A stretch of DNA of 64,000 nucleotides, from assembly GCA_051294905.1 (NCBI GenBank), contig CM119386.1:15748001-15812000 (forward strand), written 5' to 3'. This DNA comes from Botryllus schlosseri (Eukaryota). The notes under the pieces were generated by a model. It searched no databases. It was not told where the DNA came from and saw only the letters and a list, made by a program, of their open reading frames with translations. The translations under genes were made by a program, and so were the position numbers. Shown here piece by piece: positions 24,760-55,790 of this stretch (position 1 is its first letter; every line of letters begins with the position of its first letter).

Positions 24760-25006
24760 CTTTGTTTGTCTTAGGTGTTTGTCGACTACTATGGTCAATT
24801 AGTGATTTACACCAAGCTAATTTCTTCATTTTCATTCTGTAACTGCCGACTTATTTATGGCCCACTTCTAGGCTTTTATAAGACACCGCTTTCACGGATG
24901 GCAAGGAGGAGCCTAGATAAACCTTCAACACTTAGGTAGGAATTTTGCAGTCGACCTCGGTCGGACTCGAACCCGCAACCCATTGGTGTTGCAGCTGTGG
25001 ATTATA
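24760..25006 (-). mobile_element. SINE family A copy whose head is split by a MITE (remaining head at 26350-26377)
   Basis: cggactcgaacccgcaacccattggtgttgcagctgtggattata...; the rest of the head (ataccactgactacgctatctcgcc) follows the MITE. Confidence 0.7.
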
Positions 25007-26349: not shown

Positions 26350-28074
26350 GATACCACTGACTACGCTATCTCGCCTCTAGGCTCAGGATCGTGACTAAAT
26401 TGGCTCATCGCGAAGCCAATCATCTGACAACTCATCGCGTTGGATAATTAGGTACGATTTATCGGAGCTACATGCGTTGGCCATGGCCAATGAATCTCAG
26501 ATTCTATTGTTTCTATCTGCTCATAAGTAGAGCTGGACAAAATCGAGCAACTTGATGAGTCGATCTCGGATCGTGTAGACTTCGAATCAAGTCGCGTATC
26601 GATCATTATGACGTTGTAACATGATGAATATACTGAAAAGCTCAAATTTGTACCTTCTAACTTGGTGGTTCCCAACCCTTTAACGATATTTGAGCAAAAA
26701 TTTCCCCAATTAGAATAGGTCATCCGGTGAATAAAAAGGTGCTTTCTAACGCACGACCATTTGTTGACTGAGCAATAGGCCTATATGTCTAAACTATGTC
26801 GAATGCGGACCCCGTTACACATTCGTAGAGTACCGCAGACTACTTCCGTATATATTATTTAGCGCTATAGGCTATAGGTGTATAATTTCAATCTTTTTTT
26901 TTTCTTTCTGAAAATGAAGGACTGTATATAAGTGCTAAACTAGATTGCAGACATTTGCCAATCTCGTGCTAATGAGAATCAATTCCGATTTTACAGGAAC
27001 AAGTTTTCGCGAATTCAGTAATTATAATTATAATATAATTTGAAAAAGTTGAACATTTTCTGCTTGTCCCTTGTCCATGTCTGGTCGTAGCAAGGGAAAC
27101 AATTTCGGTACTCGAATCCAACAATCACAATTGTCACTCGATTCGTATCCGAGTACTTGAGCCGCTGTATCCATTTCCACTCATGAGACACATAATGTAG
27201 AATGCGATACACAAGGCACAACGAATGAATGAATAAATGAATAAATATAGGCCTTCGGTCTCGCCTCGCCCGACGATACAAAGCGCGCCTGTGCTGAGAA
27301 TCGAATCATCTTTCTCTCACGTCGATGGCTGTGCTTTTCAACCTTTTTGGACACCATCCGCACTTTTTTCGCTAAAACATTCATCCGGGCAGACCAATAG
27401 AAAATTGTTTTACAAAAAGAAAATGAATATACTTACCAATATTTTGTTGAGACGTACAACAAGTAAGATACTGGTGAAGGCCGTCAAGTGACTCATAAAA
27501 AAGACAATTATTTTCCCTCGTTTTGATTTCAAATATAGCGCACTAAACCACTTTTCGGCTAAATGAGTAGCCGGGTTTTGTGCAAGAACCCTGTTGCAGT
27601 GGTTCTCAAACAGGGGCACGAAATCTTTCACTATCTTTGAGAGCCACTGGTCTAGTGATTGGATAGCCATGTATTTATAAAAACGTCCCAGCACTCCCAT
27701 CAAAATACAGCGTATTTTCCACGAGTGAAAAATGCTTGCTGGCTGCAATCGTTTATAAGAGTATGTCACAATGGTTCGTCGAAGGGGTGCAAAATCCACA
27801 TGCTTGCTAGTAGTAGAGAAATGGTGGATATAGCCGCATATCGTCTTGTAACTTAAAGAAACTAAAATCTCTAATAAAATAAAGAAACAAAGGATAACGG
27901 ACTTACGCATTTTGCAGAATTGCAGTTCGTGACGGATTGCTGCAAGCGATCTGATCGATATGTGGCTGTCTGATTTCCGATTGAAATGAGTTTGGTGTAA
28001 TATTTCTGACGTAATTTTCGCGGTTGTAGCGTGACTTGTTATTTATGAGTGGATTGATAACTGGTTCTGTCTGT

Positions 28075-29265
28075 TGATTTCAAAACCCGGCTGACCTATC
28101 GTGTCGCGCTTTCTGGAATTGAGTACGGTTGCTATCTGTGTGTCAAAACTCGTTTGCGGTGAATATAATTTTATTATCAGGCGAATAATATCAAGGTTAT
28201 TGTCTTTGCTGTAATCGAATCTTTCTGGATCTCTATGGTGTGTACTCCGACGAAACGGAAAAGTTGACGCGGCATGACGCGGCGTGTAATCGTGGGTTGG
28301 TTGATCCAATTTCTCTTGAATGTGATGGGATGAGGGAAAATTTGCCCATTGAACATTACAGCTGTGAAGTGAACGCTCCTCTTGATCCGTATATGAGAGC
28401 CTTATGCTATACCTCAAGTGCACGGTCAAGGCGTTGGGCCAAACGAAACGATGTAAATTCACGCTTGCCGTTTGAACTGGCATACTCTGGTCCGGAACGA
28501 TAACCGTTCAGATCTGTATTAGAGTGATATATATGTATTCTTGGTATCATTTTTAAGGCTACTTGCAGAATTACGTAACTCACTATCGGGCGATGAACGG
28601 ATTCCGAAACTAGAAATGGTCCTGCCTGGCGATTTAAAACTCGGCTGACCTATCATGTCGATCAATGATTTCCGGTTCAATTGAGTACGGCTGCTATCTG
28701 CGTATAATCAAAACTCGTTTATGTTAAATTAAACTCGTTTGAATTTATTATCAGGCGAATATACTCAAGGTTACTGTATTATTTGCTGTAATTTTCCGCG
28801 TATGACGATCGAATCTTTTTGGATCTCTGTAGTGTGTAACCCGACGAAACGGAAAAGCTCGCCTGGCGTGACTCGCCGTGTCAGCGTATAATGGCGGGTT
28901 GATTGATTGATGGGTATATGATGACAATTTATGCTATGTTTCAAGCGTACGGTCAAGGTCACACGAATCGATGTAAAGTCTCGCTTGGTTGGATTCTCGT
29001 ACTTGGATGGGGTGGGGGGTGGCTGACTAAGGGGCTACACATCCAAAACTACTTCCGTAACCCAATGTCAGTCAGGCGCAGAGACGAGCGGATATAAAAA
29101 TTTGGTATTCTGAAACCATCTTGCTCCGGCTTATATTTTAAAACTCAACTGGCGTATGATTTCTCTTGAATCTCTCAATCAATAATTCCCGGTTCAATCG
29201 AGTGTGAATGCAAGCTGTCTGTGTGGTGCACGCGTTATCAAATCAAACTCGTTTGTGTCATTGAG
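28075..29265. repeat. Subterminal diverged tandem repeats (~550-bp period, 2 units plus a partial third); mirrored at ~41650-42840
   Basis: ggctgacctatc at 28089 and 28643; ttattatcaggcgaata, ggatctct and cgacgaaacggaaaag are shared between units. Confidence 0.8.
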
Positions 29266-29477
29266 TCCATGGTAGGCCTATATCACATTGATATCATTGT
29301 AAGCAGACAGTTTTGAGTAACTATGTGGGATTCTATTGAAAACAGCTTTATTACAAAGAAGCCGAGATAAGTCCATCGCTGTTGCTACTTGCTACCCGCC
29401 ATTTTCAAGTGGTTTTTGACGACGTCCAAAGCTACTTCCCGCAGCTTACGACAGTAGAGAGCGAGTGTGCCAGGAGC

Positions 29478-30150
29478 GAGCCTCGTATACGGTACAAACG
29501 AGTGTGGATTTGAATGGGAAAACAAGGCATTGGGGGATCTTTACTGGATTACTTTTGGATTTAAGTTTATTCGGACCCGGATTTGTGGATTTTACATGCT
29601 ACTCGCGAAATAATATCGCGGGCAAGTGATCCCCATGAATCAGCCGTGATCGATCGGGAGGTGATGCGATGATGTCAGTCTGGATTCAAAATACTCGTTT
29701 GGATTAATCACATCATAGTAATCAGTTTTCTTCTGGCTCGTGACTCTTGCATCGATGTGGTTCCTGTATCGAGAACTACGATACTAGATTCCATTGTACG
29801 CCGACGAATCGGGGCTCGTATACTGTACAAATGAGCGTGAATTCGGATGGGAGTACGGCGCATTGGAGTATTTTTACTGGATTACTTTTGGATTTACGTA
29901 TATCCGGACCCGGATTTTTTAAATTGTACATGCTACTGGCGAAATAATTGCGCTAGTAAGTGATGGCCATAAATCAGCCGTGATCGATCGAGAGTGATAC
30001 GATGATGTCGGTCGGGGTTTAAAATACTCATTTCGATTAATTCCATCAACGTAGTCATCTTCTTCTGACTCGTGACTCTTCCGTCGATGTGGTTCCTGTA
30101 TTGAGAACTATACGATACTCGATTCCATTGTACGCTGACGTATCGAAAAA
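29478..30150. repeat. Diverged tandem duplication, period 333 bp; mirrored at ~40765-41437
   Basis: tactggattacttttggattt at 29542 and 29875; cagccgtgatcgatcg and cgatgtggttcctgtat in both units. Confidence 0.85.
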
Positions 30151-30867
30151 GTTCGCCTCGTTTCGTAGGATACTGGGGGAAAGGCTTAATCTCGCTGAAT
30201 ACGAGTTTGGGAATATTTGGCGTTATATTCGAGTGATAAAAAACTTATCTCTAGGCAAGTAGACGTACTTGCTGAGTGATTGTAGCCTGCGACCCAAATT
30301 CCCATTGTCTCTGTCCACAATCGCTTGTGAAGTGGTGTAATGAATCGGTGATCCGAATCCAGCCCGGAATTGCTCCTGCTCCTGGATCCGATCGTAATCA
30401 CCTCCGCTCAGATGTGATCAACCTGTTGACGGATATACAGTCTTGTCGTCATCGTTGTATGTTAAGTTGACGGAATAATACTTGATCATAATGAGCAATC
30501 TGTAAGATATACATCTCAGTAGTACCGTGTTTTCTGTTTCACGGTCATACAAATCGGGTGCAGTTCAGATTAGCAAGAAATCGAGCAGTTTCATTTTCCT
30601 GGTACTGAGTTGAGACGCAATAACTACTGGTCAGGCGTAATCATCTTCCATCTACAAAGGATGTTTCATTTTGGTATGGCTGCATATCAATTGTGTATAT
30701 AAACTTGTATTTCGGCAGTCGATGAAGAAAATATGTAACCCGTTTGCTAAATATGTATGTTGTCTATTTTAGGAACACGAGAAGTGAAGTACATCAACAG
30801 TTTGATGTCAAAGAAAATATTATCCATGACGAAGCGTGAATAATGATTTTACCCGCTGCGTGTCGAA

Positions 30868-30997
30868 ATAGCGTATAGCGTATAGCGTATAATAGCGTCG
30901 ATTCCGCAGCTGCAACACCAATGGGTTGCGGGTTCGAGTCCGACTGAGTTCGACTGCAGAATTCTTACCCAAGTGTTGGATGTTTATCTAGGCTCCT
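30868..30997 (+). mobile_element. SINE family A head fragment inside the left arm
   Basis: cagctgcaacaccaatgggttgcgggttcgagtccgac...gtttatctaggctcct, shared with the host SINE copies. Confidence 0.75.
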
Positions 30998-33241
30998 ATT
31001 TTTCATATAATCCGTACAAGCGATGCCTTCTAGAAGCTCAGAAGTGGGCAGTGCTACAAGTCGGTATCTACAGGACACAAATGACGTAAATCGTCCTGGT
31101 TGAAATGACCGTATTAGCAGTCTACAAGCACAATGAATATCACAAACAACGAAACAAACTCTACCCGCCATGATATCGACTCCAGCAGGACATATTTTCG
31201 ATATATTGAGATATGTAAATTTCATTCTTAATATTTTCAATCTTGCAAGCGAACCATATCTTTTAGGGCGGCAATAATACAAGATTTGTCGTTATCGACT
31301 AACGCTGTCAAGGGCGATTTGGTGTATGGAAATGTGAATATTGATTACGACGGTGCGATTTTGGACGGTTCGCCGCGGTAAACGATCCTTGATATCAGGA
31401 AACAATCAGGCGCAGTCTGAAAATATAGTCGAACATTCGTACCCTGCTACAATACCAAGCACAAAGCGTTATTGGAAGAAAAAAATGCGATGAAGCGGCG
31501 ATCGATATGCATCGTACAAAGACGTAGTAGTAGTCACGCACAAACACACACACACACACACACTAGAATACTAGTCAGATTATAGGACCACGAACTAACA
31601 TATCGATTCAGTTTTCCATCCCATGCCACCTCATTTTGTCTCTTTCCTTTCATATTCTCTGCTTTAGTTTTCATTCGGTGTGCATTCCTCTTCTTTACTT
31701 TACCTATGCCAAGGTGGGGTGTGCGATTTCAAAGACTACTCCAAGCTCCAATTCGTTTCGACACCTCCCTGTCTTTCATTGTATCGCAGTTTTGTAGTGT
31801 TTTGAAACGATGAAAATATTAATAAACTAACACTGATACACTAAATTATCCCAAGAACAGCTGCAATACAGAAACGTTTGAGGTCTATATATTTGCGATT
31901 TTTTATTGCGTGTGAAGATTTAAAAACGACTAGTAGAATAGGTAGGAGAAGACTGGAGGAGCAAGCTCTAGCACATAATAGACATTTCGTCCATCAGTAT
32001 TGGTGTTTGTAAGGCAGGGCTAGAATCTGTGTAAAATGAGGAAAATTACTATATTATGAATGGGAGGCATTCAATAGCACCCAAGCAGAGTTCTGAAAAA
32101 CGTGAGTTGAACTGGATTGGATCCGAAAATGAACAATGCGCAGTGAGCACAATGACTCGGACTCGAGTCTCAACACCGTGATTCGGAGTTGAATATTCGA
32201 ATCCTGAGTTGGACTCGGTGGTGAATGGAAAATGATTCGACTTGACTCGAGTCCTACCGAATGTTGGGATTAAGTCACCATCCTCGAGTCACGAGTAGGG
32301 CTAGGCACAATGATTCGTGTACCCGAATCTGAAACGAGTAATATATATAACGATTCTAGTCGAGTAGTAAAAGACGATTTTTTTTCGAGTACTGAAAATA
32401 TACGCTTCTATCGCCACTAAACGGCAATTTATCAACGAAAGTCATAGGTTCGATACTAGTTTCAAGTGTGGAAGCTGTAAAACTTTGATTGGTCGTATCG
32501 CAGCATACGAAACCTACAGACTACAGTACAATGCTACGAAAGTTACTGAAAATAACAAATCGCTGGTATGCCAGCTAGTTTTATGGCTCTACAGCATCAC
32601 CAGATTTTTATGACTCTATATGGCGGGTGTTTTCAACCCGGATCCAATCATCTGGATAGTAAGTAGCCTATACACAAGTAAGTAACTCCGTCGGTCGGAA
32701 GAAGTAGGCGTATCACGCGATATACTTTTTCGTATCATAGATAATGATATCATGCAAATTCTGCACGAGATGTGTCTTGGAAGTGGCACGTAAAACGTTG
32801 TTGTCCCCCACCAATATAGCTTCTCTAGATGAGATGTCTTATTCGTTTTGCTATCTGACCCGTTTGTGGAAATCTTCAGCGACAATTATTGTTCTGGGGA
32901 TCATTTTCGTTGAGTATTAAAATATGGTCTCTCGCAGAGCGTGACGGTCAACAAATGTATGTCTCAAATATTCAGCGGAAACCGGGGTACATTATTGTTC
33001 GAGACTCCTATATATGACTTGGAATAAAGCACCGATGCCTTGTCATTCAGAGGCTGCTGTATCGAGAGCGTCCATGGCAGTTGATCGAATAATCATGTGA
33101 GAAGATGGTCAAATATGATTGTCTACCTATCTATTATGAATATTCTATTTCGGAGTGTTTCCTTGTATATCCCCGAGAGTGACGACATAGAGTTGACTAT
33201 TACTGATCTCGCGATGTGAGAATACAACTCGTGAAAAGAAG

Positions 33242-33805
33242 CTTCAATATACAATTAAATAGTATATTCATATTGAAATGAACCCGAATATTTTCGGCTG
33301 ACACTCGTCAGGGGTAATCGTCAGCAACTAGTAGAGAATTGGAAAGAACATTGTATATCAACAATCGTATCACAAAATATGACGTCACCAGCATGAAATT
33401 TCGAATGAGAGAACGTTCAATGTACTATTTTTAGGTGATACACGAACTCCTTTTGTTGACAGAGTTTTGGTTGGTGTATTTTGATAAAAGTTGATTCCAA
33501 GGCACACAAATGGAATTGTGAATTGTGAATTGTGGAATTGTGTGCCTTGGAATCAACTTTTATCAAAATACACCAACCAAAACTCTGTCAACAAAAGGAG
33601 TTCGTGTATCACCTAAAAATAGTACATTGAACGTTCTCTCATTCGAAATTTCATGCTGGTGACGTCATATTTTGTGATACGATTGTTGATATACAATGTT
33701 CTTTCCAATTCTCTACTAGTTGCTGACGATTACCCCTGACGAGTGTCAGCCGAAAATATTCGGGTTCATTTCAATATGAATATACTATTTAATTGTATAT
33801 TGAAG
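33242..33805. repeat. Perfect hairpin: 268-bp arms (33242-33509, 33538-33805) and 28-nt loop, part of a 595-bp insertion present only in the left arm
   Basis: Arms are exact reverse complements by eye; the insertion is bounded by a 10-bp direct repeat AAAGAAGCTT (33235-33244, 33830-33839) that is single-copy in the right arm (~37670). Confidence 0.92.
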
Positions 33806-34606
33806 TTCTGTACCTCTAAGAAGCTCTTCAAAGAAGCTTGTGATCTGTGATGGATTACAGAATATTCCGATGTCAACGCTGACGTTCTTGAAAAGGGTGT
33901 GATTCGTTATAGTTCTGATCTTGTGTGACTACCCCAAACAGTAGATTATCGACTATAAAACGTTTGTGTAGCTATAATTCGTATCCAAGTTGTTGAACTA
34001 AGACATATGACGGTAGAATCGAATGTCATACATAAAAACTTATTCAAATACCTACTAAGAGTGAACATTACAACGTTGAGTCACTTGAAAAGTTGTCGTG
34101 GTAGCGGAATATTGTTTGTGAATCGATATGGTTAGTAACAGTTGCATTGTTCGCACATTTAATGCTATTTATCGATATCGGATCGGCTTATGAAATATCA
34201 GTGTGAGAACCAAGTGCGTGCCAACTGCCCTTTGTCGATGGAAATAAACACCTGTCTCCCGTATTGCTGTCAGAAAACAATCTGTTTTCATGAAATACGC
34301 ATATTTGCACGCCAAGTCCTGCTAATTTTGTTGCCCGTTCGTTTTTGTATTAACATTAAGTGTGTAGTATCGCTCCTTTGGCGATGGTAATTTGGCGGAA
34401 AAAGTCAGCACCTAAGATTAAAAAAATCAACCAGAGAACGAGCTGTTTCTCCGTGACCTTTCAATATTCACCTATGGTTTTGAATTCACAGCAAATGTCA
34501 TTATTGTTGACAATATGTGAATTGCTATCGAAGATTCGTAGTAATGGTTTTGTCTGTTTTTAGGATGATATATTTCTCAAACAGTTTCCCAAAATGAGAG
34601 ACTGTT

Positions 34607-35950
34607 ATGGAAAGACACTTCGACCCGGATCCGCCAGTACAGAGATGCGTATATATCGCGTCGGGTTCTCACCGCTCCGAATTATATAGACTCGCTACGT
34701 TCGCCAGGTTTTCGAGACTGTCGTACACAAAGCGTGCAGATTCAGCATCTGACGGATATTATTGGCTAGGGTTCGAAGACAAAATTAAATGTTTCGGATG
34801 CAGTATTTCACTCGAATAATGGGTTGAAAAGGATACGAATGTAAGTTGTCATGAAGCGAGTTGTGTTCGAGACGTATTCAATATTCCCGTTGAAAGATCG
34901 AATTTCAGGAGTCTATTACGGGAGTTTAAGCTTCAAATCGAGACACCGCAAGTCAATAACAGCGACATAAAACTTGCGAATATCATTGACCGAGAACACG
35001 CGTGTTTGATTAAGAACCTCGACTTGAAAAGGGAATCGAAGCGACGCGAAACCTTCAAGAAATGGCCTAGCTATCCAATACCCCACGCAGTAGGCGAGTT
35101 GGCGAAACAAGGGTTTTTCTATCTCGGTAACTTAGACAGAACGCAGTGCTTTAGCTGCTTCGGTGTTCTTCGCAATTGGAAACCCATAGACGACGTATCG
35201 GAAATACACCTTACACATTTTCCAAAATGTACTTTCGCGCGTGGTAGCTTTTCAGGAAATATCGCACTAGCTGAGCACGACCGCGGCAATTTGGATGACC
35301 TGCTTCACGAGAAAATACGACGGCTCACTATCAATGTGAAAGAACCAGATGAGCCCTACGAGGATGAAAAACACTATCTTGCTGAACTATTCCCTTGGCT
35401 TAACCCCGCGAATCCTGTAATGTCGTCCTTGTCACGAAGAATAGCAACCTTCGACGAAGGTTGGGATCCCGCTAAAATCAATGCTAGCGTTGAGCAATTA
35501 GCAAATGCGGGGTTTTATTACATCGATTCGGACAAGACGAAATGTTTTTACTGCAATGGTGGACTTCGGTGGAACCGGACAGACGAGGTTTGGACGGAAC
35601 ATGCTAAATTGTTTCCGCAATGCGAGTACGTACTTCGAATGAAAGGTATCGAATTCGGGCGAAGCATCGAAAACACATATCCAAATCTCAACCGTCCGAT
35701 TATTAGAAACCCCATCACGAAGTTGGAGTTGACTAAACGACAAAATGTTCTGCGGAATCGTCAATCAAACGATGGATCACCGTTGGATTGCATCGAAAAT
35801 GGGAGAGGCCGTGACGTGTAAACGATGTGAAATAAATATAAATGAATATGACTATAGCATGTGGACATCTTTGCATTGTTTCTAGACTTGTGGGACTGAC
35901 GTAGAACGCAGTGGTGGCAGTCATGAAGTACTTCTATTTTTTTTTTCTCA
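34607..35950 (+). pseudogene. Intronless inhibitor-of-apoptosis (IAP/BIRC family) pseudogene: 3 BIR domains plus decayed RING
   Basis: 34607-35821 is one frame with a single TAA at 34817-34819. BIR1 RLATF..KIKCFGC..*W..CHEASC; BIR2 RRETF..GFFY..DRTQCFSC..W..HLTHFPKC; BIR3 RIATF..LANAGFYY..DKTKCFYC..W..EHAKLFPQC. Frameshifted RING remnants CKRC (35817) and ACGHL (35857) follow. Confidence 0.9.
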
Positions 35951-36062
35951 GAATTTTGGTAGGTTTTACCTAATTACACTACATACTCAAGTGCCTTGTG
36001 TTGGAATACTTCTATTTCTATCAGTTGGATTAGACCGGACATTCTAACTGGTTGTAAAACTA

Positions 36063-36903
36063 TTGCTATTCTTCGTGACAAGGACGACATTACAGGATTC
36101 GCGGGGTTAAGCCAAGGGAATAGTTCAGCAAGATAGTGTTTTTCATCCTCGTAGGGCTCATCTGGTTCTTTCACATTGATAGTGAGCCGTCGTATTTTCT
36201 CGTGAAGCAGGTCATCCAAATTGCCGCGGTCGTGCTCAGCTAGTGCGATATTTCCTGAAAAGCTACCACGCGCGAAAGTACATTTTGGAAAATGTGTAAG
36301 GTGTATTTCCGATACGTCGTCTATGGGTTTCCAATTGCGAAGAACACCGAAGCAGCTAAAGCACTGCGTTCTGTCTAAGTTACCGAGATAGAAAAACCCT
36401 TGGTTCGCCAACTCGCCTACTGCGTGGGGTATTGGATAGCTAGGCCATTTCTTGAAGGTTTCGCGTCGCTTCGATTCCCTTTTCAAGTCGAGGTTCTTAA
36501 TCAAACACGCGTGTTCTCGGTCAATGATATTCGCAAGTTTTATGTCGCTGTTATTGACTTGCGGTGTCTCGATTTGAAGCTTAAACTCCCGTAATAGACT
36601 CCTGAAATTCGATCTTTCAACGGGAATATTGAATACGTCTCGAACACAACTCGCTTCATGACAACTTACATTCGTATCCTTTTCAACCCATTATTCGAGT
36701 GAAATACTGCATCCGAAACATTTAATTTTGTCTTCGAACCCTAGCCAATAATATCCGTCAGATGCTGAATCTGCACGCTTTGTGTACGACAGTCTCGAAA
36801 ACCTGGCGAACGTAGCGAGTCTATATAATTCGGAGCGGTGAGAACCCGACGCGATATATACGCATCTCTGTACTGGCGGATCCGGGTCGAAGTGTCTTTC
36901 CAT
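36063..36903 (-). pseudogene. Inverted truncated copy of the IAP (BIR1, BIR2 and start of BIR3)
   Basis: Mirror of 34607-35447 with the same premature stop; one K/N difference in BIR2; diverges after ...SRRIA at the arm boundary. Confidence 0.9.
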
Positions 36904-39900
36904 AACAGTCTCTCATTTTGGGAAACTGTTTGAGAAATATATCATCCTAAAAACAGACAAAACCATTACTACGAATCTTCGATAGCAATTCACATATTGT
37001 CAACAATAATGACATTTGCTGAGAATTCAAAACCATAGGTGAATATTGAAAGGTCACGGAGAAACAGCTCGTTCTCTGGTTGATTTTTTTAATCTTAGGT
37101 GCTGACTTTTTCCGCCAAATTACCATCGCCAAAGGAGAGATACTACACACTTAATGTTAATACAAAAACGAACGGGCAACAAAATTAGCAGGACTTGGCG
37201 TGCAAATATGCGTATTTCATGAAAACAGATTGTTTTCTGACAGCAATACGGGAGACAGGTGTTTATTTCCATCGACAAAGGGCAGTTGGCACGCACTTGG
37301 TTCTCACACTGATATTTCATAAGCCGATCCGATATCGATAAATAGCATTAAATGTGCGAACAATGCAACTGTTACTAACCATATCGATTCACAAACAATA
37401 TTCCGCTACCACGACAACTTTTCAAGTGACTCAACGTTGTAATGTTCACTCTTAGTAGGTATTTGAATAAGTTTTTATGTATGACATTCGATTCTACCGT
37501 CATATGTCTTAGTTCAACAACTTGGATACGAATTATAGCTACACAAACGTTTTATAGTCGATAATCTACTGTTTGGGGTAGTCACACAAGATCAGAACTA
37601 TAACGAATCACACCATTTTCAAGAACGTCAGCGTTGACATCGGAATATTCTGTAATCCATCACAGATCACAAGCTTCTTTTCACGAGTTGTATTCTCACA
37701 TCGCGAGATCAGTAATAGTCGACTCTATGTCGTCACTCTCGGGGATATACAAGGAAACACTCCGAAATAGAATATTCATAATAGATAGGTAGACAATCAT
37801 ATTTGACCATCTTCTCACATGATTATTCGATCAACTGCCATGGACGCTCTCGATACAGCAGCCTCTGAATGACAAGGCATCGGTGCTTTATTCCAAGTCA
37901 TATATAGGAGTCTCGAACAATAATGTACCCCGGTTTCCGCTGAATATTTGAGACATACATTTGCTGACCGTCACGCTCTGCGAGAGACCATATTTTAATA
38001 CTCAACGAAAATGATCCCCAGAACAATAATTGTCGCTGAAGATTTCCACAAACGGGTCAGATAGCAAAACGAATAAGACATCTCATCTAGAGAAGCTATA
38101 TTGGTGGGGGACAACAACGTTTTACGTGCCACTTCCAAGACACATCTCGTGCAGAATTTGCATGATATCATTATCTATGATACGAAAAAGTATATCGCGT
38201 GATACGCCTACTTCTTCCGACCGACGGAGTTACTTACTTGTGTATAGGCTACTTACTATCCAGATGATTGGATCCGGGTTGAAAACACCCGCCATATAGA
38301 GTCATAAAAATCTGGTGATGCTGTAGAGCCATAAAACTAGCTGGCATACCAGCGATTTGTTATTTTCAGTAACTTTCGTAGCATTGTACTGTAGTCTGTA
38401 GGTTTCGTATGCTGCGATACGACCAATCAAAGTTTTACAGCTTCCACACTTGAAACTAGTATCGAACCTATGACTTTCGTTGATAAATTGCCGTTTAGTG
38501 GCGATAGAAGCGTATATTTTCAGTACTCGAAAAAAAATCGTCTTTTACTACTCGACTAGAATCGTTATATATATTACTCGTTTCAGATTCGGGTACACGA
38601 ATCATTGTGCCTAGCCCTACTCGTGACTCGAGGATGGTGACTTAATCCCAACATTCGGTAGGACTCGAGTCAAGTCGAATCATTTTCCATTCACCACCGA
38701 GTCCAACTCAGGATTCGAATATTCAACTCCGAATCACGGTGTTGAGACTCGAGTCCGAGTCATTGTGCTCACTGCGCATTGTTCATTTTCGGATCCAATC
38801 CAGTTCAACTCACGTTTTTCAGAACTCTGCTTGGGTGCTATTGAATGCCTCCCATTCATATTATAGTAATTTTCCTCATTTTACACAGATTCTAGCCCTG
38901 CCTTACAAACACCAATACTGATGGACGAAATGTCTATTATGTGCTAGAGCTTGCTCCTCCAGTCTTCTCCTACCTATTCTACTAGTCGTTTTTAAATCTT
39001 CACACGCAATAAAAAATCGCAAATATATAGACCTCAAACGTTTCTGTATTGCAGCTGTTCTTGGGATAATTTAGTGTATCAGTGTTAGTTTATTAATATT
39101 TTCATCGTTTCAAAACACTACAAAACTGCGATACAATGAAAGACAGGGAGGTGTCGAAACGAATTGGAGCTTGGAGTAGTCTTTGAAATCGCACACCCCA
39201 CCTTGGCATAGGTAAAGTAAAGAAGAGGAATGCACACCGAATGAAAACTAAAGCAGAGAATATGAAAGGAAAGAGACAAAATGAGGTGGCATGGGATGGA
39301 AAACTGAATCGATATGTTAGTTCGTGGTCCTATAATCTGACTAGTATTCTAGTGTGTGTGTGTGTGTGTGTTTGTGCGTGACTACTACTACGTCTTTGTA
39401 CGATGCATATCGATCGCCGCTTCATCGCATTTTTTTCTTCCAATAACGCTTTGTGCTTGGTATTGTAGCAGGGTACGAATGTTCGACTATATTTTCAGAC
39501 TGCGCCTGATTGTTTCCTGATATCAAGGATCGTTTACCGCGGCGAACCGTCCAAAATCGCACCGTCGTAATCAATATTCACATTTCCATACACCAAATCG
39601 CCCTTGACAGCGTTAGTCGATAACGACAAATCTTGTATTATTGCCGCCCTAAAAGATATGGTTCGCTTGCAAGATTGAAAATATTAAGAATGAAATTTAC
39701 ATATCTCAATATATCGAAAATATGTCCTGCTGGAGTCGATATCATGGCGGGTAGAGTTTGTTTCGTTGTTTGTGATATTCATTGTGCTTGTAGACTGCTA
39801 ATACGGTCATTTCAACCAGGACGATTTACGTCATTTGTGTCCTGTAGATACCGACTTGTAGCACTGCCCACTTCTGAGCTTCTAGAAGGCATCGCTTGTA

Positions 39901-39917
39901 CGGATTATATGAAAAAT

Positions 39918-40047
39918 AGGAGCCTAGATAAACATCCAACACTTGGGTAAGAATTCTGCAGTCGAACTCAGTCGGACTCGAACCCGCAACCCATTGGTGT
40001 TGCAGCTGCGGAATCGACGCTATTATACGCTATACGCTATACGCTAT
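39918..40047 (-). mobile_element. SINE family A head fragment inside the right arm (mirror copy)
   Basis: Reverse complement of 30868-30997. Confidence 0.75.
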
Positions 40048-43000
40048 TTCGACACGCAGCGGGTAAAATCATTATTCACGCTTCGTCATGGATAATATTT
40101 TCTTTGACATCAAACTGTTGATGTACTTCACTTCTCGTGTTCCTAAAATAGACAACATACATATTTAGCAAACGGGTTACATATTTTCTTCATCGACTGC
40201 CGAAATACAAGTTTATATACACAATTGATATGCAGCCATACCAAAATGAAACATCCTTTGTAGATGGAAGATGATTACGCCTGACCAGTAGTTATTGCGT
40301 CTCAACTCAGTACCAGGAAAATGAAACTGCTCGATTTCTTGCTAATCTGAACTGCACCCGATTTGTATGACCGTGAAACAGAAAACACGGTACTACTGAG
40401 ATGTATATCTTACAGATTGCTCATTATGATCAAGTATTATTCCGTCAACTTAACATACAACGATGACGACAAGACTGTATATCCGTCAACAGGTTGATCA
40501 CATCTGAGCGGAGGTGATTACGATCGGATCCAGGAGCAGGAGCAATTCCGGGCTGGATTCGGATCACCGATTCATTACACCACTTCACAAGCGATTGTGG
40601 ACAGAGACAATGGGAATTTGGGTCGCAGGCTACAATCACTCAGCAAGTACGTCTACTTGCCTAGAGATAAGTTTTTTATCACTCGAATATAACGCCAAAT
40701 ATTCCCAAACTCGTATTCAGCGAGATTAAGCCTTTCCCCCAGTATCCTACGAAACGAGGCGAACTTTTCCGATACGTCAGCGTACAATGGAATCGAGTAT
40801 CGTATAGTTCTCAATACAGGAACCACATCGACGGAAGAGTCACGAGTCAGAAGAAGATGACTACGTTGATGGAATTAATCGAAATGAGTATTTTAAACCC
40901 CGACCGACATCATCGTATCACTCTCGATCGATCACGGCTGATTTATGGCCATCACTTACTAGCGCAATTATTTCGCCAGTAGCATGTACAATTTAAAAAA
41001 TCCGGGTCCGGATATACGTAAATCCAAAAGTAATCCAGTAAAAATACTCCAATGCGCCGTACTCCCATCCGAATTCACGCTCATTTGTACAGTATACGAG
41101 CCCCGATTCGTCGGCGTACAATGGAATCTAGTATCGTAGTTCTCGATACAGGAACCACATCGATGCAAGAGTCACGAGCCAGAAGAAAACTGATTACTAT
41201 GATGTGATTAATCCAAACGAGTATTTTGAATCCAGACTGACATCATCGCATCACCTCCCGATCGATCACGGCTGATTCATGGGGATCACTTGCCCGCGAT
41301 ATTATTTCGCGAGTAGCATGTAAAATCCACAAATCCGGGTCCGAATAAACTTAAATCCAAAAGTAATCCAGTAAAGATCCCCCAATGCCTTGTTTTCCCA
41401 TTCAAATCCACACTCGTTTGTACCGTATACGAGGCTCGCTCCTGGCACACTCGCTCTCTACTGTCGTAAGCTGCGGGAAGTAGCTTTGGACGTCGTCAAA
41501 AACCACTTGAAAATGGCGGGTAGCAAGTAGCAACAGCGATGGACTTATCTCGGCTTCTTTGTAATAAAGCTGTTTTCAATAGAATCCCACATAGTTACTC
41601 AAAACTGTCTGCTTACAATGATATCAATGTGATATAGGCCTACCATGGACTCAATGACACAAACGAGTTTGATTTGATAACGCGTGCACCACACAGACAG
41701 CTTGCATTCACACTCGATTGAACCGGGAATTATTGATTGAGAGATTCAAGAGAAATCATACGCCAGTTGAGTTTTAAAATATAAGCCGGAGCAAGATGGT
41801 TTCAGAATACCAAATTTTTATATCCGCTCGTCTCTGCGCCTGACTGACATTGGGTTACGGAAGTAGTTTTGGATGTGTAGCCCCTTAGTCAGCCACCCCC
41901 CACCCCATCCAAGTACGAGAATCCAACCAAGCGAGACTTTACATCGATTCGTGTGACCTTGACCGTACGCTTGAAACATAGCATAAATTGTCATCATATA
42001 CCCATCAATCAATCAACCCGCCATTACACGCTGACACGGCGAGTCACGCCAGGCGAGCTTTTCCGTTTCGTCGGGTTACACACTACAGAGATCCAAAAAG
42101 ATTCGATCGTCATACGCGGAAAATTACAGCAAATAATACAGTAACCTTGAGTATATTCGCCTGATAATAAATTCAAACGAGTTTAATTTAACATAAACGA
42201 GTTTTGATTATACGCAGATAGCAGCCGTACTCAATTGAACCGGAAATCATTGATCGACATGATAGGTCAGCCGAGTTTTAAATCGCCAGGCAGGACCATT
42301 TCTAGTTTCGGAATCCGTTCATCGCCCGATAGTGAGTTACGTAATTCTGCAAGTAGCCTTGAAAATGATACCAAGAATACATATATATCACTCTAATACA
42401 GATCTGAACGGTTATCGTTCCGGACCAGAGTATGCCAGTTCAAACGGCAAGCGTGAATTTACATCGTTTCGTTTGGCCCAACGCCTTGACCGTGCACTTG
42501 AGGTATAGCATAAGGCTCTCATATACGGATCAAGAGGAGCGTTCACTTCACAGCTGTAATGTTCAATGGGCAAATTTTCCCTCATCCCATCACATTCAAG
42601 AGAAATTGGATCAACCAACCCACGATTACACGCCGCGTCATGCCGCGTCAACTTTTCCGTTTCGTCGGAGTACACACCATAGAGATCCAGAAAGATTCGA
42701 TTACAGCAAAGACAATAACCTTGATATTATTCGCCTGATAATAAAATTATATTCACCGCAAACGAGTTTTGACACACAGATAGCAACCGTACTCAATTCC
42801 AGAAAGCGCGACACGATAGGTCAGCCGGGTTTTGAAATCAACAGACAGAACCAGTTATCAATCCACTCATAAATAACAAGTCACGCTACAACCGCGAAAA
42901 TTACGTCAGAAATATTACACCAAACTCATTTCAATCGGAAATCAGACAGCCACATATCGATCAGATCGCTTGCAGCAATCCGTCACGAACTGCAATTCTG

Positions 43001-44595
43001 CAAAATGCGTAAGTCCGTTATCCTTTGTTTCTTTATTTTATTAGAGATTTTAGTTTCTTTAAGTTACAAGACGATATGCGGCTATATCCACCATTTCTCT
43101 ACTACTCTTGCTTTGGTGCTTATGCCATATGGCTTGAAAAATAAGCTCCAAAACTATCATGGAGAATGAGCACATTAGAGCTCGCTACCTTCTGATACGC
43201 TGCTCCAATTTCCCATTTTCTGTTTCGCGAGTAAATGAGAACAGACAAGAAAGTCAGGTTACCGTGTGTTCAGCCCTCATTCTCAATCTAACTTGAGAAT
43301 GAGAGTTCATAGCATTTCAATAACCTTGAAGCATTGGTCCTTAAACTTGTTTGACTGCGACCAAAATCTTAGTTTCAGTGGTATATCACGACTCAAGCCT
43401 TACACATCAAAAAGAATGCACTTCTAATATTAGTATGCTACCATTTTACGGGCATGTATGACATAAATAACGTGCACACAACAATTGTCCGCAACACAGC
43501 TCTACGAAACATTGGGATTACCATATGTTCTTATCTGGAAACATATCTGACGTAGGCGATTTCAAATTTTGGTGAATTATATATTCCTTTGCTCGTCGCA
43601 TTTCTATTACTGTCTACTCAAATTATTTCAATAAAATTACTTTTAAAATAACTTATAAAAAATACACATTGGAAGGACTGGACTAGAAAGTCAGTCTTGC
43701 GTTATTTTCCCACGTGCCGCAGGATCAGACTTGTTGACGCCCGCCACTACACCCGCTTTCGAAGCAGAATTTCTAGTACGTATTAGTGCGCAAATAATAA
43801 TTCTCTACGGCAGATGAGAGACAAAATTATTGTTAAAGCTACGAACAGGTCAAATAATTTTTTACAATTACGCCGCAACGACAAAAGTGAGGGAGCCACT
43901 GCTGTTGAATTTCCTATCAAGTCTATTTGAATTATTCCACGTTAGAATTATTTGCGATTTTCATCCACTCTCATCCGGATTTTTATCCGCACTCATCCGC
44001 ACCACGTTTGTCGCTCACACAGGAATTTTTTCCATTAAAAGTACTATTGTGGATTATCCAACTACGCCAAGTCTCGCTCATGCCATAAGTTTGGTATGAA
44101 CGGGAGGTTCACGTTCGCGTTCTGTGTGTGAACCTCAGAAATTTGTAGCTTAGCGTTCGCCAACGAACTTTGGTAGGTTCTGCATTGTGAACCTTTACCA
44201 TTTATTACAATTTTTCACATTTGGTAAAATTAAGCTCCGCTTGACAATTAACTTTGTGTGTCTGTGCCAGCCGTCTGCGAAACCGAACTACCAAAGGATT
44301 TTGTTGAGACTTGAGTTGAAAGTACAATGCATTTGACCATTGTCCATCTCTAACACATGCAAATGTATACTCTGTTGATTTCGATTGTTGTTCAAAAGAA
44401 CCTGTTTGTCTGTATATCCACTCACTCATCTCGTTTTGCGCACGTTAGCTCTACTGCAAACACAATTTTCCGTGTTTTGTGGTAATTATGTTATGTTATA
44501 AGTGTATTTTTGAATTTGATCCCTTGGCTATAAACATCTTAATTCCCTTTACCAGCTTAACGGAACCACGGTAAACTATTATAATGAGCACCCGC

Positions 44596-49226: not shown

Positions 49227-51188
49227 AGCTGATCACATTTTAGTCACTGTGATTTTAATTGCCGATTGTGGAGTCATTACACTGCGATCAGGTTCTATTA
49301 GGTCGGAAAATCTGAATTCCATTGACCACTGCGAAGAAACCCCACAGGAACACTCTACGATCGGGGTCCGCAGCGGAGCATCTGGTTCCGGGAGGTACGG
49401 ACCGTGTAATTCGGCGCAAAAGAACAGAAACATAATTTTGCAGCCTTGCTCTAATGAAAGATAAAGTTTATAGATAATGAAATTGCTAATTAATGAAAAA
49501 ATATAATAACCCTGATTTGCTCGAAATGAATCAACGACATTGAAATAGCCTTGTGAACACGATGCTGATTATAGGGTTGCATATAAAATATAAATCAATT
49601 TAAAACAAATATGTTTAAAACATGGCCCTTGTTTGAAACACGTTTTATATCATTTTATTTATTTTTATTCGGTCTTGACGTCACGAGTCTTTAATTGTGA
49701 CATCAGAGTGGATTGAATTTGACAATTGAGGATATATAGAGTAAATATGGCCCCTTCGACGAAAAGGGCTTCCGACCACTGTGATAAACAGACCAAAAAT
49801 ATCTAACCAGAACTACATCGTTATGCAGCATTTTTACTGTCGACGGTCATCATCATCACAACGCCCATTCCGTACCAATGATCTATATCTACTTGCTATA
49901 TCTGTTGAACCTACGACGATATCGAGGGTTCCAGCCACCCCACATCGCATACGTCCACTGTATTGAGTGCAAATGGTCAGTAGGATCAACTACTAGATGT
50001 TTTTTCGAAATTATTTACACAGTTATGGCATAATTAGACAACGTTTGAAATAACACATTTTTTTAAAATTCTTTTGTTTAAAACACTGTTTAATCATGTT
50101 TCATTAAACAAAGTATTTTAAAGCACATTTGTTTTGAATGCAACCCCATGGTGATATAATTCGCAAATGTATTACTTTCAAGGCTGAAATCGGGTACCGT
50201 GAAGAGAAAATGAACTGACACACATGTAAACACAGGAAACTGTATTTCCGGGTTCTTATCGATATCTGAAAGTCTGTTTTTGTCACGCCAGTGTAGATTT
50301 CACGAAATTAGAACGTCGTTGTGACTTTTTTCGCAATGCCATATGATATTTGCGTTTCACTACCCGTATAGTCATAACCCTATGCAATGCCAAATACGAA
50401 TTTTGAGGCGTTGTTCTCGACTTTCAGTGGTCCACATCATTCTACGGGAATTTATATGCTTGAATGGGGTCAACCAATAATAGGACGGTTGCGGTATGTC
50501 ATGTGACCACTTGGTTAATAATTATAATCATGACAGATCTTCCTCCCATCAATAGATCTTCTGAACCATATCTTTCTCCAGATTTGAGCTCTTACCATAC
50601 AGCTGTCTTCATTTAGCCTAGTAGTACGGTAATGCGTTTTACCGCGCTGTTACAAAAAGAGGTTTTTGTTAATAGTGAAAGATCGCTGATGACTTATGCG
50701 CTTTATAAACTTGGTAAGTTACTATTTGGTTTCCCCTAGTTTTCGAGCAAATAAAAAGCATACGGGGTGACCATTTGCAATTGCGATCAGCAGCATTTTA
50801 TTGCTGGGCCGATATATACTTTTCGAACTTTTGGGAATAGCGAATTTGGAATCACTAAAAGTTAGAACGGGGCCTGAGCCAAGGTTAAGCCAAAGTTGCA
50901 CAGTTCGTTCAGAATGGAGTATCTACGGGCGTATGGGGTCGTCGTCTAAAATACCGAAACATGAGACCAAGGTGTGGTGATTATTGTTTCTTCGTGATCT
51001 CACCAATTGTGTTGATTACCCGCATTTGTGTTGATTACCCGCATCTTAACCTACCTATATATTGAGTGTTTTATATACCGCATTTAGTTGCTTGAGTCTT
51101 CATTTAGTTAATATAAATCAAACTCGTAGTACGTTTTCAGTGCAATTTTATTACCTAAACGAACGTTGACGTCTTTTCCGTAAAAGAC

Positions 51189-54100
51189 ATGGCTGCTTGC
51201 AACGAGAAGCTAATCCGCGCACCAGTGTTAGAAGTGTTACCACGTGCGGTGGATTCGCAGAAGGTTTTCAACCATTGGAAGCGTATGTTGGAGAGCTATA
51301 TTGAAGCCGTTGACCAATCAAGAAATGCCGGCTCCGCATAGTCTGGGAGTGAGTCGGATTCACCCGCACTTTCTGCCATCAATAAGGTCGCTATTATGGG
51401 TGGATACATGTCTGCTGAGCTATTTTCGTATATCGAAGATAAGGAGAACTACCTTGAAGCAATGGAGAAATTGAAGAAGATGGATGTATGTCAAGAAGAA
51501 CAATACTATTTACGCTCGTCATAACCTCTCGACCAGAAAACAAATGACGAGTGAGAGCGTATCTGAATTTAAGAATTGTTAACATTGGGCAAGAAATGCG
51601 AGTTCAAGACGGTTACCGCAGAAACGCATTTGGAAGAATCTGTACGCGATGCGTTCATTTCTGGATTGCTATCAGCAAATATACGTCTTCGTCTTCTGGA
51701 ACACGAGGAACTATCTTTGGATAAAGCGCTTCAAGTTGCAGACACTATGGAGAAAGCAGAGTGCTTCTCTCGTTCCTATGAGACCACCGCTACTGTGAAT
51801 AGCATGGCTCATATAGATTGCGCATTCGCACACATTGCTGTGAATAATGATGCGAGCGAGATCGCTAATGTGAATAGCGTGGCTCGCACGGATTGTACAT
51901 CTTCGAATAATGACGGAAGTGAAGTCGCAGTGGTCCGTCGTCAATCGTCGAAGTGTATATTTTCTGGTAACAGTCACGTTTAAGACCGTGCCCTATGCCC
52001 TGCTCGGTACGTGAGGTGTTTCAAGTGCCAAAAGCAAGGACATTTCAGTAAAATGTGTCGATCCCAAGTAGTGAAAACAGCTGCGTCTGTCACTGAACCT
52101 CGAATCTCGTCCATTCTTGCATCTAATAGCTGTAACTCGCCGTCCAACACTACTGTGCCCGCTTACATTCGTAAAGCAAAGTTGCGTGCCTTACTGGACT
52201 CCGGAGCCTGGGAAAATTACATGGACTCTTAAGTAGCCGCTTCGCTTGGGTTGATTTCGCTTGGGTTGAAAGGCAGAGGACTGCAAACCATGATCAAACT
52301 CGCTTCAGGACAATTCGCCGCCGAAGTCGACGGTTTCGTTTGTGTTCCTGTGGATTTGGGTAATGGAATATATAAGTCTGTTCGGTTCGGCGTTTTCGAC
52401 GATCTTTGTTGTGATTTGGTTCTAGGCCATAATTTCTTCGAAAAGCATAAAAAGAGTTATTTTGGAATTCAGTGGCGATGGAGATCTAACCATCAACAGC
52501 GGCAGAGCAAGTGGCGGTGGCGATGGGATGGTCACAAATGAAAGCGTTGACGGGAGCGCTGATACAGCAGCAGCAACTGATGCCTGTAATGTGATAGCTG
52601 CTAAAGTGGATGAGACGCCGTTTATTTTTCGGTTTGTAGATGGAAACGTGCAGCCCTTGGCTACCAAGTCTAGAAACTACAGTAATGATGACAAGGTGTT
52701 AATACGGGACGAAGTCTCAAAACTTTTGGAATCTGGAGTGAATGAACCTTCCTCGTCTCCGTAGAGAGCTCAGGTATTGGTGGTAAAGAACTCCAGACAC
52801 AAGAAGAGATTGGTCGTTGATTACTCTCAAACAATCAACCGCTATACTCCACTAGATGCGTATCCGCTTCCGAAGATTGAAAACGTAGTAAATGAAGTAG
52901 CTCGAGGTAAATGGGACAGTGCGATAGATTTGAAGTCCGCTTACCATCAGGTACCTCTTGGAAGTAATGATAAGCCTTTTACTGCATTAGAAGCTTGTGG
53001 TCGTCTATATCAATTTTGCAGGCTTCCCTTCGGAGTCACTAATGGAGCTGCTGCGTTTCAACGCTTTATTGACAGATTTAGGGGGCAACGGACTAAGAGG
53101 CACTGTCGCTTATCTAGACGACGCTACCATTTATGGCGATACAAAGCAACAGCATGATGAACGTTTGGAAGCTTTTATAGCCGCCGAGAAGGTTTGTGAT
53201 CTAACTCTGAATGTTAACAAGTGCAAGTTCTGTGTTAAGGAATTGTCCATTTTGGGACACCTCGTCGCTCACGACTCCATAAAGCCTGATCCTGCTCATT
53301 TGAAGCCTCTAGTTGACTTACCGGCGCCTTCTGACGGAAAAAGTTTGAAACGTTGACTGGGAATGTTTTCTTACTACTCGAAGTGGATATCGAATTTTTC
53401 CGGTAAAATTGGTCCGCTATGTAACAACGATTTGACATTTCTCGATGGTGCCGGTGAAAATAAATCTGATCTCTCTCTCTCTTACCCTTAAGCAGTGAAG
53501 CCTTGATGGCATTTCGGCAATTGAAAAACGATCTCCTACGGTCAAGTCTCGGTTGTATTCTGGAGGATGAAGAATTTAATATCGAGTGTGATGCTTCTGA
53601 ATTCGCCATTGCTGCAATATTCAGCCAAAGAGGGGGGCCGGTAGCGTTTGCGCACAGAACGCTGAAGAAGCATGAGAAGAGGTACGCTGCCGTAGAAAAA
53701 GAAGCAGCTGCCATTATTGAGGCAGTACGCAAGTGGGGATATTTACTTCATATAAAACCGTTTACCTTGATCACGGATCAAAAGGCACTGTCCTTCATAT
53801 TCGCGAAATCTCATCGCAGTAAGATAAAGAATACAAAATTGTCCTTGTGGAAACTCGAGTTAAGTGCAATCAAACATCGACCAGGTAAAGACAACGTAGC
53901 CGCCGATTCGATATCGAGAGTTTGTGCCTTTACAGGATCGAGCTTACGGGATATTCACGTAACACTGTCGCACCCAGGAGTGCGACGGATGATGCACTTC
54001 GTTCGAGCTAAATGTTTACCTTTTTCCACAGAAGAAAAAAGGAGTGCCGAGATTGCCCAGAATGTGCTGAAATTAAACCTCGATTTTCAGACCAGAAGCT

Positions 54101-55790
54101 TATACTCTCGTCAAAGCTATTAGGGCATGGGATCGCGTGAGTATAGATTTCAAGGGACCAGTCGCTGGAAAGCGACCTTACTTGCTTGTTGTAATCGACG
54201 AATTCAGTCGTTTTCCTTTCGTCTTCCCATGCGCCGATATGACGTCGCAGACTATTATTAGCTGTTTATCGTCATTGTTCGCTTTGTTTGGATTACCTGG
54301 CTATGTACATAGTGACAGGGGAAAGTCTTTTCTCTCTGAAGATGTCAACGAGTTTTTGATCCGAAAGGGTGTTGCGACCAGTCGTACCACTCCTTATCGC
54401 CCTACGGGCAACAGTCATAACAGTCAATGTGAGCGGGCTAATCAGACGATATGGAGGTCAATTGAAATTTTACTCGCATCTCACAAATTGCCAGAGAGCG
54501 CTTGGGAAGTGGTACTAGCAGACGCCTTACACTCTATAACAGGGGTCTCCAACACGCGGCCCGCGGGCCGCATGCGGCCCGCGAGGTCCTATTTTGCGGC
54601 CCGTGACCTGATTTCAAAATATTTCAGAAAAACGCTTGGTAAATCATTTTGAAATGCTGAAATTGATTTCAGTCGAAACAGGATGTTGTTGTTGTTCAAA
54701 GTAAGCCATTCTATGTGTCCAATATCACTATTTCTCACTAGTCGATACGGCTTCGGCATGAAAATATCATTCCATGGATGAAGAATTTGTTGGTACGAAT
54801 GGGTATATTGCCTTGACGTGCAATGGCCCACCACTATTAAGACCGAGACGCTTTAAAAACGACTTCGGGCTCTCCAAAAGACCATGCTTTACGAGGAGAT
54901 ACTTGTCTAGCAAGTATAGGCCTACCGTGTCTATAGCTAACCCCAATATTGATTCTTTAATCCAGGGGTGGCCAATCTGCGGCATTAGAAGGGAAATTAT
55001 GCGGCTGTCGACACTTTAAATAACTACCCTAAGTTTCCGAAGATAACCCCTACATCAGCTTTATCGGTGAATCTGATCACATGGGCCGAAAAAGGATAAA
55101 TGTTTTGTAGTAATATGTGAAACTATACTAATATTTTTTGACGAAATTCAATCATCGATATAAAAAATTTTACGCGCTAGGCGCGACTACAGAACGGTTT
55201 CCTGTGGCTCTTTACAACATAACTAATAACGATTTCGGTGCGCATAGTAAGCCGATATGCATAAATAGATTAGTTCGGAGGGTACCGGCAATGGACATGG
55301 ACAGTTTAACGTGGGTATTTGGCCCCAGCTATAGTTTATCACGGCTAACCAACGGTATGCGGCCGCAGGCTACATGAGTAATCGAAATGCGGCCGTGAAT
55401 AGCAAAAATGTAGGCCACCCCTGTTTTAGCGGCTATACAGAGTGTTGTCAGATATCGTGTACAGCTCATAGTTCAAAATATAACGAAATTGATGATCATG
55501 ATACTTTTTGTTGTATTTGTGTTTGTTCAATAAATTATTATTTCTTTTGTGCTGGCTATAGCCTAACCGTCGCCCATGTTAGAGAGCACAGCATTCTAAT
55601 AACGTAGAGTTATCAGACGTGGTTGTTCATCTGCGTTGCCTACTTTTATCTCGATATTGATGACATGCGGCCCGCGGCCTCTATGAATTTGGAAAAGTGG
55701 CCCGCGACCCATTTTGAGTTGGCGACCCCTGCTCTATAAGGTCATTATTATGTACTGCCACCGGAGTCACTCCGCATGAACGTTTTCTTT
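51189..55790 (+). pseudogene. gag-pol pseudogene with frameshifts and stops, integrase interrupted by a MITE
   Basis: Zinc knuckle CFKCQKQGHFSKMC; protease LLDSGA; RT VVDY..IN, LPFG, YLDD; RNase H ECDAS, EKEAAAI; integrase HPG, IDFKG, VIDEFSRF, HSDRG, CERAN; ALHSI|RSLLCTATGVTPHERF across the MITE. Confidence 0.9.
54540..55731. mobile_element. hAT (Buster/Charlie-like) MITE (1192 bp) nested in the gypsy integrase
   Basis: Ends CAGGGGTCTCCAAC / GTTGGCGACCCCTG, exact 8-bp TSD CTCTATAA. Confidence 0.88.

Follow-up and report, generated by a model that had tools for sequence, protein, structure and literature searches.

We analysed a 64,000-nucleotide stretch of the Botryllus schlosseri genome (contig CM119386.1, positions 15,748,001–15,812,000; hereafter designated the window, with positions counted from its first letter) and found that the block at 27809–43106, a near-perfect palindrome of 15,298 bp, is best described as a non-autonomous Maverick/Polinton derivative that keeps one parental end, doubled in inverted orientation. 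The block very probably belongs to the Maverick/Polinton class, and the mechanism that we favour for its formation, with about even confidence, is copy-back synthesis outside the chromosome followed by integration.

A repeat search combined with a base-by-base comparison resolved the block into two inverted arms and a 615-bp spacer. The left arm (27809–35447, plus strand, parental orientation) starts with AGTAGTAG and is 7,639 bp long including a 595-bp extra piece; the right arm (36063–43106, minus strand), its inverted copy, is 7,044 bp long and ends with CTACTACT; and the unique spacer (35448–36062, plus strand) holds the 3' part of a BIR gene and 241 bp more, as the parental continuation of the left arm. 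In the repeat search, the arms pair in two segments, 27809–33244 with 37671–43106 and 33830–35447 with 36063–37680, and the inverted repeats (7,044 bp each) make up 92% of the element. Between the arms, 10 substitutions (5 transitions and 5 transversions) and no small insertions or deletions were counted over 7,044 bp, corresponding to 99.86% identity, and the outer 745 bp contain no mismatch. The 595 bases by which the left arm exceeds the right comprise a 585-bp insert and a 10-bp duplication of AAAGAAGCTT; when they are subtracted, the element measures 14,703 bp. The arm and spacer lengths and the coordinates given in a first-pass annotation of the window were reproduced in this comparison, as was the 595-bp size of the insert, and its estimate by eye of about a dozen arm substitutions is replaced by the exact count of 10.

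Complementarity between the arms ends exactly at the element termini, and CTTGCT directly abuts both of them (27803–27808 on the left and 43107–43112 on the right), forming the perfect 6-bp direct repeat to which the first-pass annotation had drawn attention. The flanking DNA is unique, and neither flank repeats the other in inverted orientation. Moreover, the terminal 22-mer was found only at the two element ends, with 0 occurrences expected in shuffled sequences. At boundaries fixed by the palindrome, the chance of a perfect 6-bp direct repeat is ~1/4096, and that of an AGTAGT start is about the same again.

Vertebrate Mavericks are diagnosed by end motifs, most often 5'-(AGT)2//(ACT)2-3' and alternatively (AG)3//(CT)3, together with perfect 6-bp target duplications; they are 12.7–24.6 kb long, intact elements have terminal inverted repeats of 46–1,447 bp, and the terminal repeats have been ascribed to jumping-back in protein-primed replication (Barreat & Katzourakis, PMC8097293). 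The block has (AGT)2//(ACT)2 ends, a perfect 6-bp duplication, terminal inverted repeats and a length within this range, whereas its repeats extend over 7,044 bp and it lacks every gene that defines the class, namely pPolB, the rve integrase, and the ATPase, protease and capsid genes. Having the ends, duplication and size but none of the genes, it is therefore not an autonomous Maverick. The absence of core genes, already asserted in the first-pass annotation, was borne out by two kinds of search. When 65 six-frame pieces, each of 50 aa or more, were searched, BIR was the only Pfam domain matched, and none of the pieces matched PF03175 of pPolB; and tblastn of the window with all 13 Maverick proteins of a family from ENA assembly ERZ25067576 (hereafter the ENA family), including its pPolB, matched the BIR gene only. 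In the same Pfam and ENA-family searches, no rve integrase was detected inside 27809–43106 and no capsid, packaging ATPase or protease in the element; the only rve match in the window lies in a retrotransposon with long terminal repeats (LTRs) at ~54.1–54.7 kb. No gene was detected in the ~6.8 kb of each arm outside the BIR gene. For the longest open reading frame (ORF) of the arms (154 aa), a search gave no homologue, and its duplicated unit is not conserved at the protein level, so that the arms look non-coding. The terminal 19-mer, searched against metagenome and viral contigs, gave only chance matches of 19–22 nt inside unrelated sequence.

The first-pass annotation had treated the element as empty and missed an IAP-like gene at its centre (34598–35821, plus strand), which reads from the end toward the centre and crosses the boundary between the left arm and the spacer. 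The gene contains three BIR matches (Pfam BIR, E 1e-39 and 4e-5) in a single frame throughout, interrupted by one in-frame stop, and the stop-bearing region is present in both arm copies with a single substitution between them. IAP membership requires one or more BIR domains, which are present here, and many members also have a C-terminal RING; downstream of the BIR ORF no significant RING domain was found, the match obtained being of 8 residues with an E of 0.026 in a tiny search. By tblastn, tunicate IAPs aligned with the gene at 41–44% identity, and the closest relatives of its protein are tunicate IAPs (Ciona, Styela and Clavelina; 36–44% identity). The other BIR relatives are one Logan contig and a BIR protein whose record is assigned to an Endozoicomonas metagenome-assembled genome, and no relative was found in the viral contigs scanned. 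The Endozoicomonas entry (P0003, a BIR-repeat protein in NCBI) lies on a 1.9-kb contig and is more likely animal-host DNA that was binned with the symbiont. At present the element is inert and carries a broken IAP gene.

The IAP-like gene also gives the junction a polarity. Its homologues align without a break across 35447/35448, from the left arm into the spacer, whereas on the right side their alignments stop at 36063–36070. The right-arm copy of the gene (36063–36912, minus strand) consists of the 5' part only, is cut at the fold-back junction, and its ORF leaves the homology past that point. Since the homologues are continuous from the left arm to the spacer and broken on the right, the left arm and the spacer represent the parental order. 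With that the direction is settled: the right arm is the copy and 36062/36063 the sole illegitimate junction. The geometry proposed in the first-pass annotation, in which 36062 is joined to the complement of 35447, agrees with this polarity.

A BIR match (P0010) led to the ENA eukaryote assembly ERZ25067576 (36% GC) and its multi-copy family of autonomous Mavericks, in which the IAP is closest to ascidian IAPs among the proteins retrieved. There, a gene encoding BIR and RING domains sits in a dense intronless gene block that also encodes a zinc-finger–pPolB fusion, an A32-like ATPase, an rve+Chromo integrase and a double-jelly-roll capsid protein. Polymerase pieces from other copies matched PF03175 (E 1e-10), while the 1,265-aa polymerase of the reference copy as a whole matched neither PF03175 nor any PDB or PHROG entry. 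The loci considered are L009 and L011–L020, and seven copies were mapped, the ctg8226 reference and six others. The reference copy is 14,528 bp long with ~780-bp terminal repeats, AGTAGTA at both ends and a perfect 6-bp duplication, CTGCTC; the 6-bp duplications of the six others are likewise all perfect (AATATC, TATCTA, GTAGTA, TCAGTA, ATCGAT and GACGGG). All seven mapped copies have AGTAGTA/TACTACT ends and lengths of 14,249–16,141 bp. The terminal repeats of the family are 80–99% identical to each other, and its protein clusters comprise 28–236 members, from which it follows that the family is abundant. In every full copy, the IAP is the first gene inward from one terminal repeat, oriented as in the window.

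The block thus resembles the ENA family in its AGTAGTA/TACTACT ends, its 6-bp duplication, its length (14.2–16.1 kb in the family) and the position of an IAP gene as the first inward from one end. It differs in that the ENA-family IAP has one BIR and a RING and lies 0.7 kb from the end, whereas the window gene has three BIRs, no RING, and lies 6.8 kb from the end. The Maverick class proposed in the first-pass annotation is accordingly backed both by the published diagnostic ends and 6-bp duplication and by likeness to this family. From the family it is further clear that animal Mavericks can carry IAP (anti-apoptosis) genes as standard accessories beside the terminal repeat; no description of Maverick-associated IAP genes was found in the literature searched. 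Accessory or cargo genes adjoining the terminal repeats are a feature that the block shares with Mavericks, and host-derived cargo beside a terminal repeat has been reported in those of nematodes. In butterfly polintons, ~2-kb terminal repeats contain capsid and protease genes, and derivatives without polB still bear terminal repeats (preprint, bioRxiv 10.1101/2025.02.07.637071). As in the block, the repeats of the butterfly elements reach into genes, which are consequently doubled in inverted orientation, but those repeats are 2 kb long, the core genes are kept, and no near-complete palindrome has been reported.

The favoured mechanism may be envisaged as follows. A strand begun at the left end of a linear parental genome would be extended for ~8.25 kb by protein-primed strand-displacing synthesis, would then switch to the displaced strand, or to itself, 615 nt back, and would copy back to the terminus. 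The product would be a snap-back molecule of about unit length (14.7 kb) with two identical ends, each competent for replication and integration, which the integrase of a helper element would insert at CTTGCT, thereby making the 6-bp duplication. After integration, the arms would have acquired the 10 substitutions, and the 595-bp palindromic piece would mark either a gain in one arm or a loss in the other. The complete identity of the outer 745 bp, compared with only 80–99% for terminal repeats in the ENA family, is what copying of the entire arm in one step, out to the terminus, should leave. As in copy-back and snap-back genomes, one terminus and its adjoining sequence stand at both ends of the block, inverted, with a single illegitimate junction at 36062/36063.

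Comparable products are known from other systems. The phi29 polymerase is a strand-displacing enzyme that is protein-primed in its own phage. The chimeras that it makes are mostly inverted and intramolecular, with intervening deletions, and are primed on 2–21 nt of complementarity (PMC1855051). These chimeras of multiple displacement amplification share with the block the geometry of an inverted intramolecular copy with an intervening gap, in their case primed on short complementarity by a strand-displacing polymerase, but they are an in-vitro artefact of random-primed synthesis and not a natural element. Among adenoviruses, SYREC ('symmetric recombinant') is a unit-length palindrome with the left viral end at both termini. 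It is on record as an adenovirus–host recombinant that requires a helper. A snap-back defective genome is defined as a palindrome of nearly full length that has no coding capacity (PMC13506859). The block has in common with SYREC and with snap-back and copy-back defective genomes one genome end at both ends in inverted orientation and, on the favoured reading, a polymerase template switch, whereas defective viral genomes are extrachromosomal, transient and in most described cases those of RNA viruses, and the block is chromosomal with a target duplication.

A second rearranged element was found in the ENA family. Locus L012 (2178–17043; 14,866 bp; duplication ATCGAT) is another example of the same REARRANGEMENT; it has lost ~4 kb of its IAP-side end, a stretch that began with most of the capsid gene and reached the IAP, and in that place stands the 3.1 kb of the polymerase end, copied in inverted orientation. 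At its junction, the alignments overlap by up to 13 nt, and its target duplication is perfect. L012 is the copy-back (panhandle) form, whereas the window block is the snap-back form; compared with the block, the arms of L012 are 3.1 kb long and most core genes still lie between them. A further copy, L019 (9395–18884, ~9.5 kb), has an internal deletion in which both ends, the IAP and the polymerase were kept and the block from the ATPase to the capsid is gone. In a model of random breakage and re-priming, the total length falls in the range of the ENA family, which serves here as the yardstick for the window element, only ~8% of the time. The size constraint raised in the first-pass annotation is suggestive only, being supported by the unit length of both the window block and L012 and countered by the existence of the 9.5-kb L019.

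The arms contain several repeats of their own. A subterminal duplication (28059–28987) consists of two diverged units, ~70% identical and ~555–594 bp apart, and two 333-bp tandem units (29482–30145) are 83% identical; the former is mirrored in the right arm, and the mirror copy of the latter lies at 40769–41433. A dispersed host repeat resembling a short interspersed element (SINE) is nested at 30903–31157, with its mirror at ~39758–40012, and the arm also carries two smaller repeat fragments. Because the SINE-like and other internal repeats occur in both arms, they are older than the arm duplication, and the parent had therefore resided in a chromosome. The 585-bp insert found only in the left arm (33245–33829) forms a perfect palindrome of its own, with 268-bp arms (33242–33509 and 33538–33805; 0 mismatches) around a 28-bp loop made up of GAATTGT repeats; 24 more bases come after it (span 33242–33839), and the direct repeat that flanks the insert is the 10-bp AAAGAAGCTT. 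No further copy of the insert was found within the window, and it could represent either a miniature transposon of the foldback type or the product of a local template switch. Copies of the SINE-like family, which are 72–88% identical, lie at 4823–4971, 24802–25001, 30903–31157, 39758–40012, 57315–57449 and 63595–63804. The family contains a tRNA-like GGTTCGAGTCC box, for which ARAGORN and Rfam made no calls; no tRNAs and no Rfam families were found in the window.

Several observations weigh against a Maverick genome copied back outside the chromosome. No parent or relative was retrieved from the element's own genome, so that the class assignment rests on the ends, the duplication, the size and analogy. 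Between the window and the ENA family, no nucleotide similarity was found past the 7 terminal bases AGTAGTA. The window BIR protein is 43% identical to the Maverick-borne IAP over 45% of its length and 41–44% identical to tunicate IAPs over 86–90%, the Maverick-borne IAP being no closer. The gene-free stretch of 6.8 kb from the end to the BIR gene, compared with 0.7 kb in the ENA family, is unexplained. In L012, the outer terminal-repeat part is 70–92% identical, compared with 94–98% for the inner arm blocks, a gradient that would not be predicted for a simple copy-back reaching the terminus itself; and the ORF at its junction is single-copy, giving therefore no sign that this derivative has spread. 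Finally, L019 shows that integrated derivatives need not be of unit length, and the chromosomal residence of the parent, recorded by the SINE-like repeat nested in both arms, fits a rearrangement in place equally well.

Such a rearrangement, within the same class, of a Maverick already integrated at CTTGCT is the alternative that survives best, and we regard it as possible but rather unlikely. A break or stalled fork near 36062 would have been repaired by fold-back or template switching that copied the left part backwards, and the new copy of the left repeat would have annealed to the resident right terminal repeat, with deletion of the core genes and retention of the duplication. The 6-bp duplication would thus be kept without integration in trans, and this bears directly on the argument of the first-pass annotation that a chromosomal fold-back cannot recreate a target duplication, which holds for a plain fold-back and fails where resolution by homology takes place inside existing terminal repeats. 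The nested host repeats show that a long chromosomal residence preceded the event, the greater divergence of the outer repeat of L012 is what resolution inside a pre-existing repeat is expected to leave, and the single-copy junction of L012 and the length of L019 point the same way. In the window, however, the arms show no divergence step toward their ends, for which P is ~0.02 over 400 bp even at 99% terminal-repeat identity, although heteroduplex correction or identical parental repeats could mask such a step. A rearrangement in place also calls for two events, one illegitimate and the other homologous, at the same random break in the chromosome, and it offers no reason for the nearly unit length of both derivatives. 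Collectively, the copy-back with integration in trans put forward in the first-pass annotation is plausible and favoured, while one locus cannot separate it from repair in place.

Improbable, in our view, is an origin outside the Mavericks, from a foldback-type cut-and-paste element or another gene-capturing transposon in which the AG start and the 6-bp duplication would be coincidental. It would account for an element in which no Maverick gene is found and whose Maverick assignment lacks a relative in the same genome, and the diverged internal repeats of the arms recall foldback elements. Target duplications of foldback, P and hAT elements are 7–9 bp long, and the arms of foldback transposons are built of short tandem repeats. 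The block shares with foldback transposons (FB and Galileo) very long inverted arms and little or no coding capacity, but its arms are a unique 7-kb sequence with a gene cut at the junction and only two diverged two-copy duplications rather than arrays of short repeats, its duplication is of 6 bp, and its ends are AGTAGT. The (AGT)2 ends and 6-bp duplication constitute the published Maverick signature and are common to all seven mapped ENA copies, and no transposase was found. Least of all do we expect an artefact, whether a fold-back chimeric read, of a palindromic kind common in amplified or long-read data, or two inverted insertions with a deletion between them: a chimeric read would finish in the inverted left flank, whereas the right flank is unique with a matching duplication, the arms differ by 10 substitutions and the 595-bp piece, and independent insertions would not share one duplication.

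Additional features were noted in the ENA family. Toward its N terminus, the polymerase (L011:6184–9981, with equivalents in L012–L019) bears several C2H2 zinc fingers (Pfam E 6e-17), and in most copies seen its ORF is broken up into two to four pieces. Two types of terminal sequence occur among L009, L011 and L013–L018 and are differently placed at the polymerase and IAP ends between copies; the ends are unlike in ctg8226 and L013, being swapped between the two, and alike in L014, L017 and L018. Such mixing of terminal types suggests frequent exchange or copying between ends. L020, considered as a candidate for the presence of two inverted 147-aa genes, was rejected as an ordinary copy with a nested insertion; the insertion (L020:10768–13480) has inverted repeats of 437 bp that are 97% complementary, and it carries a DUF8422 gene. 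Elsewhere in the window, the LTR retrotransposon at 50973–55962 has 152-bp LTRs that are 95% identical, and its reverse transcriptase, RNase H and integrase pieces lie in several separate ORFs, showing that it is degraded. An ORF at 1277–1780 (minus strand) encodes a nanos-type zinc finger (Pfam zf-nanos, E 4e-12), with no homologue in a word-based protein search. An inverted repeat at 17812–17937 and 18405–18530, with 126-nt arms, 88% complementary and 467 nt apart, may be a miniature inverted-repeat element.

To our knowledge, the replication and movement of Mavericks/Polintons have never been directly shown. Protein-primed, strand-displacing replication of a free linear Maverick genome has been deduced from the genes and terminal repeats. 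Mavericks and their defective derivatives are already known; what is new here is a 92% palindrome with no core gene and a clean duplication, together with evidence for a recurrent process of end replacement. No palindromic, copy-back or defective-interfering Maverick derivative was found described in the literature searched. If a polymerase of this kind switched templates and the product was then integrated in trans, one would expect to find just such a near-perfect palindrome, devoid of core genes but with its Maverick ends intact and its duplication clean. We tentatively propose, with somewhat less than even confidence, that the block is an integrated snap-back defective genome of a polintovirus. 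The element's own strand-displacing polymerase would have made it, packaging would have kept it to unit length, and the integrase of a helper would have placed it in the germ line. It is also a possibility that transcription through the 7-kb inverted arms yields a long hairpin RNA feeding small-RNA silencing of related IAP-bearing Mavericks. If the proposal is true, the block would record, as a fossil, the replication of Mavericks in the form of free linear genomes with protein priming, and their production of forms like defective interfering ones; and should such derivatives turn up repeatedly, at different sites and with unit length, they would provide genomic evidence for an extrachromosomal stage, helper-dependent spread and a packaging-size limit in the Maverick life cycle.

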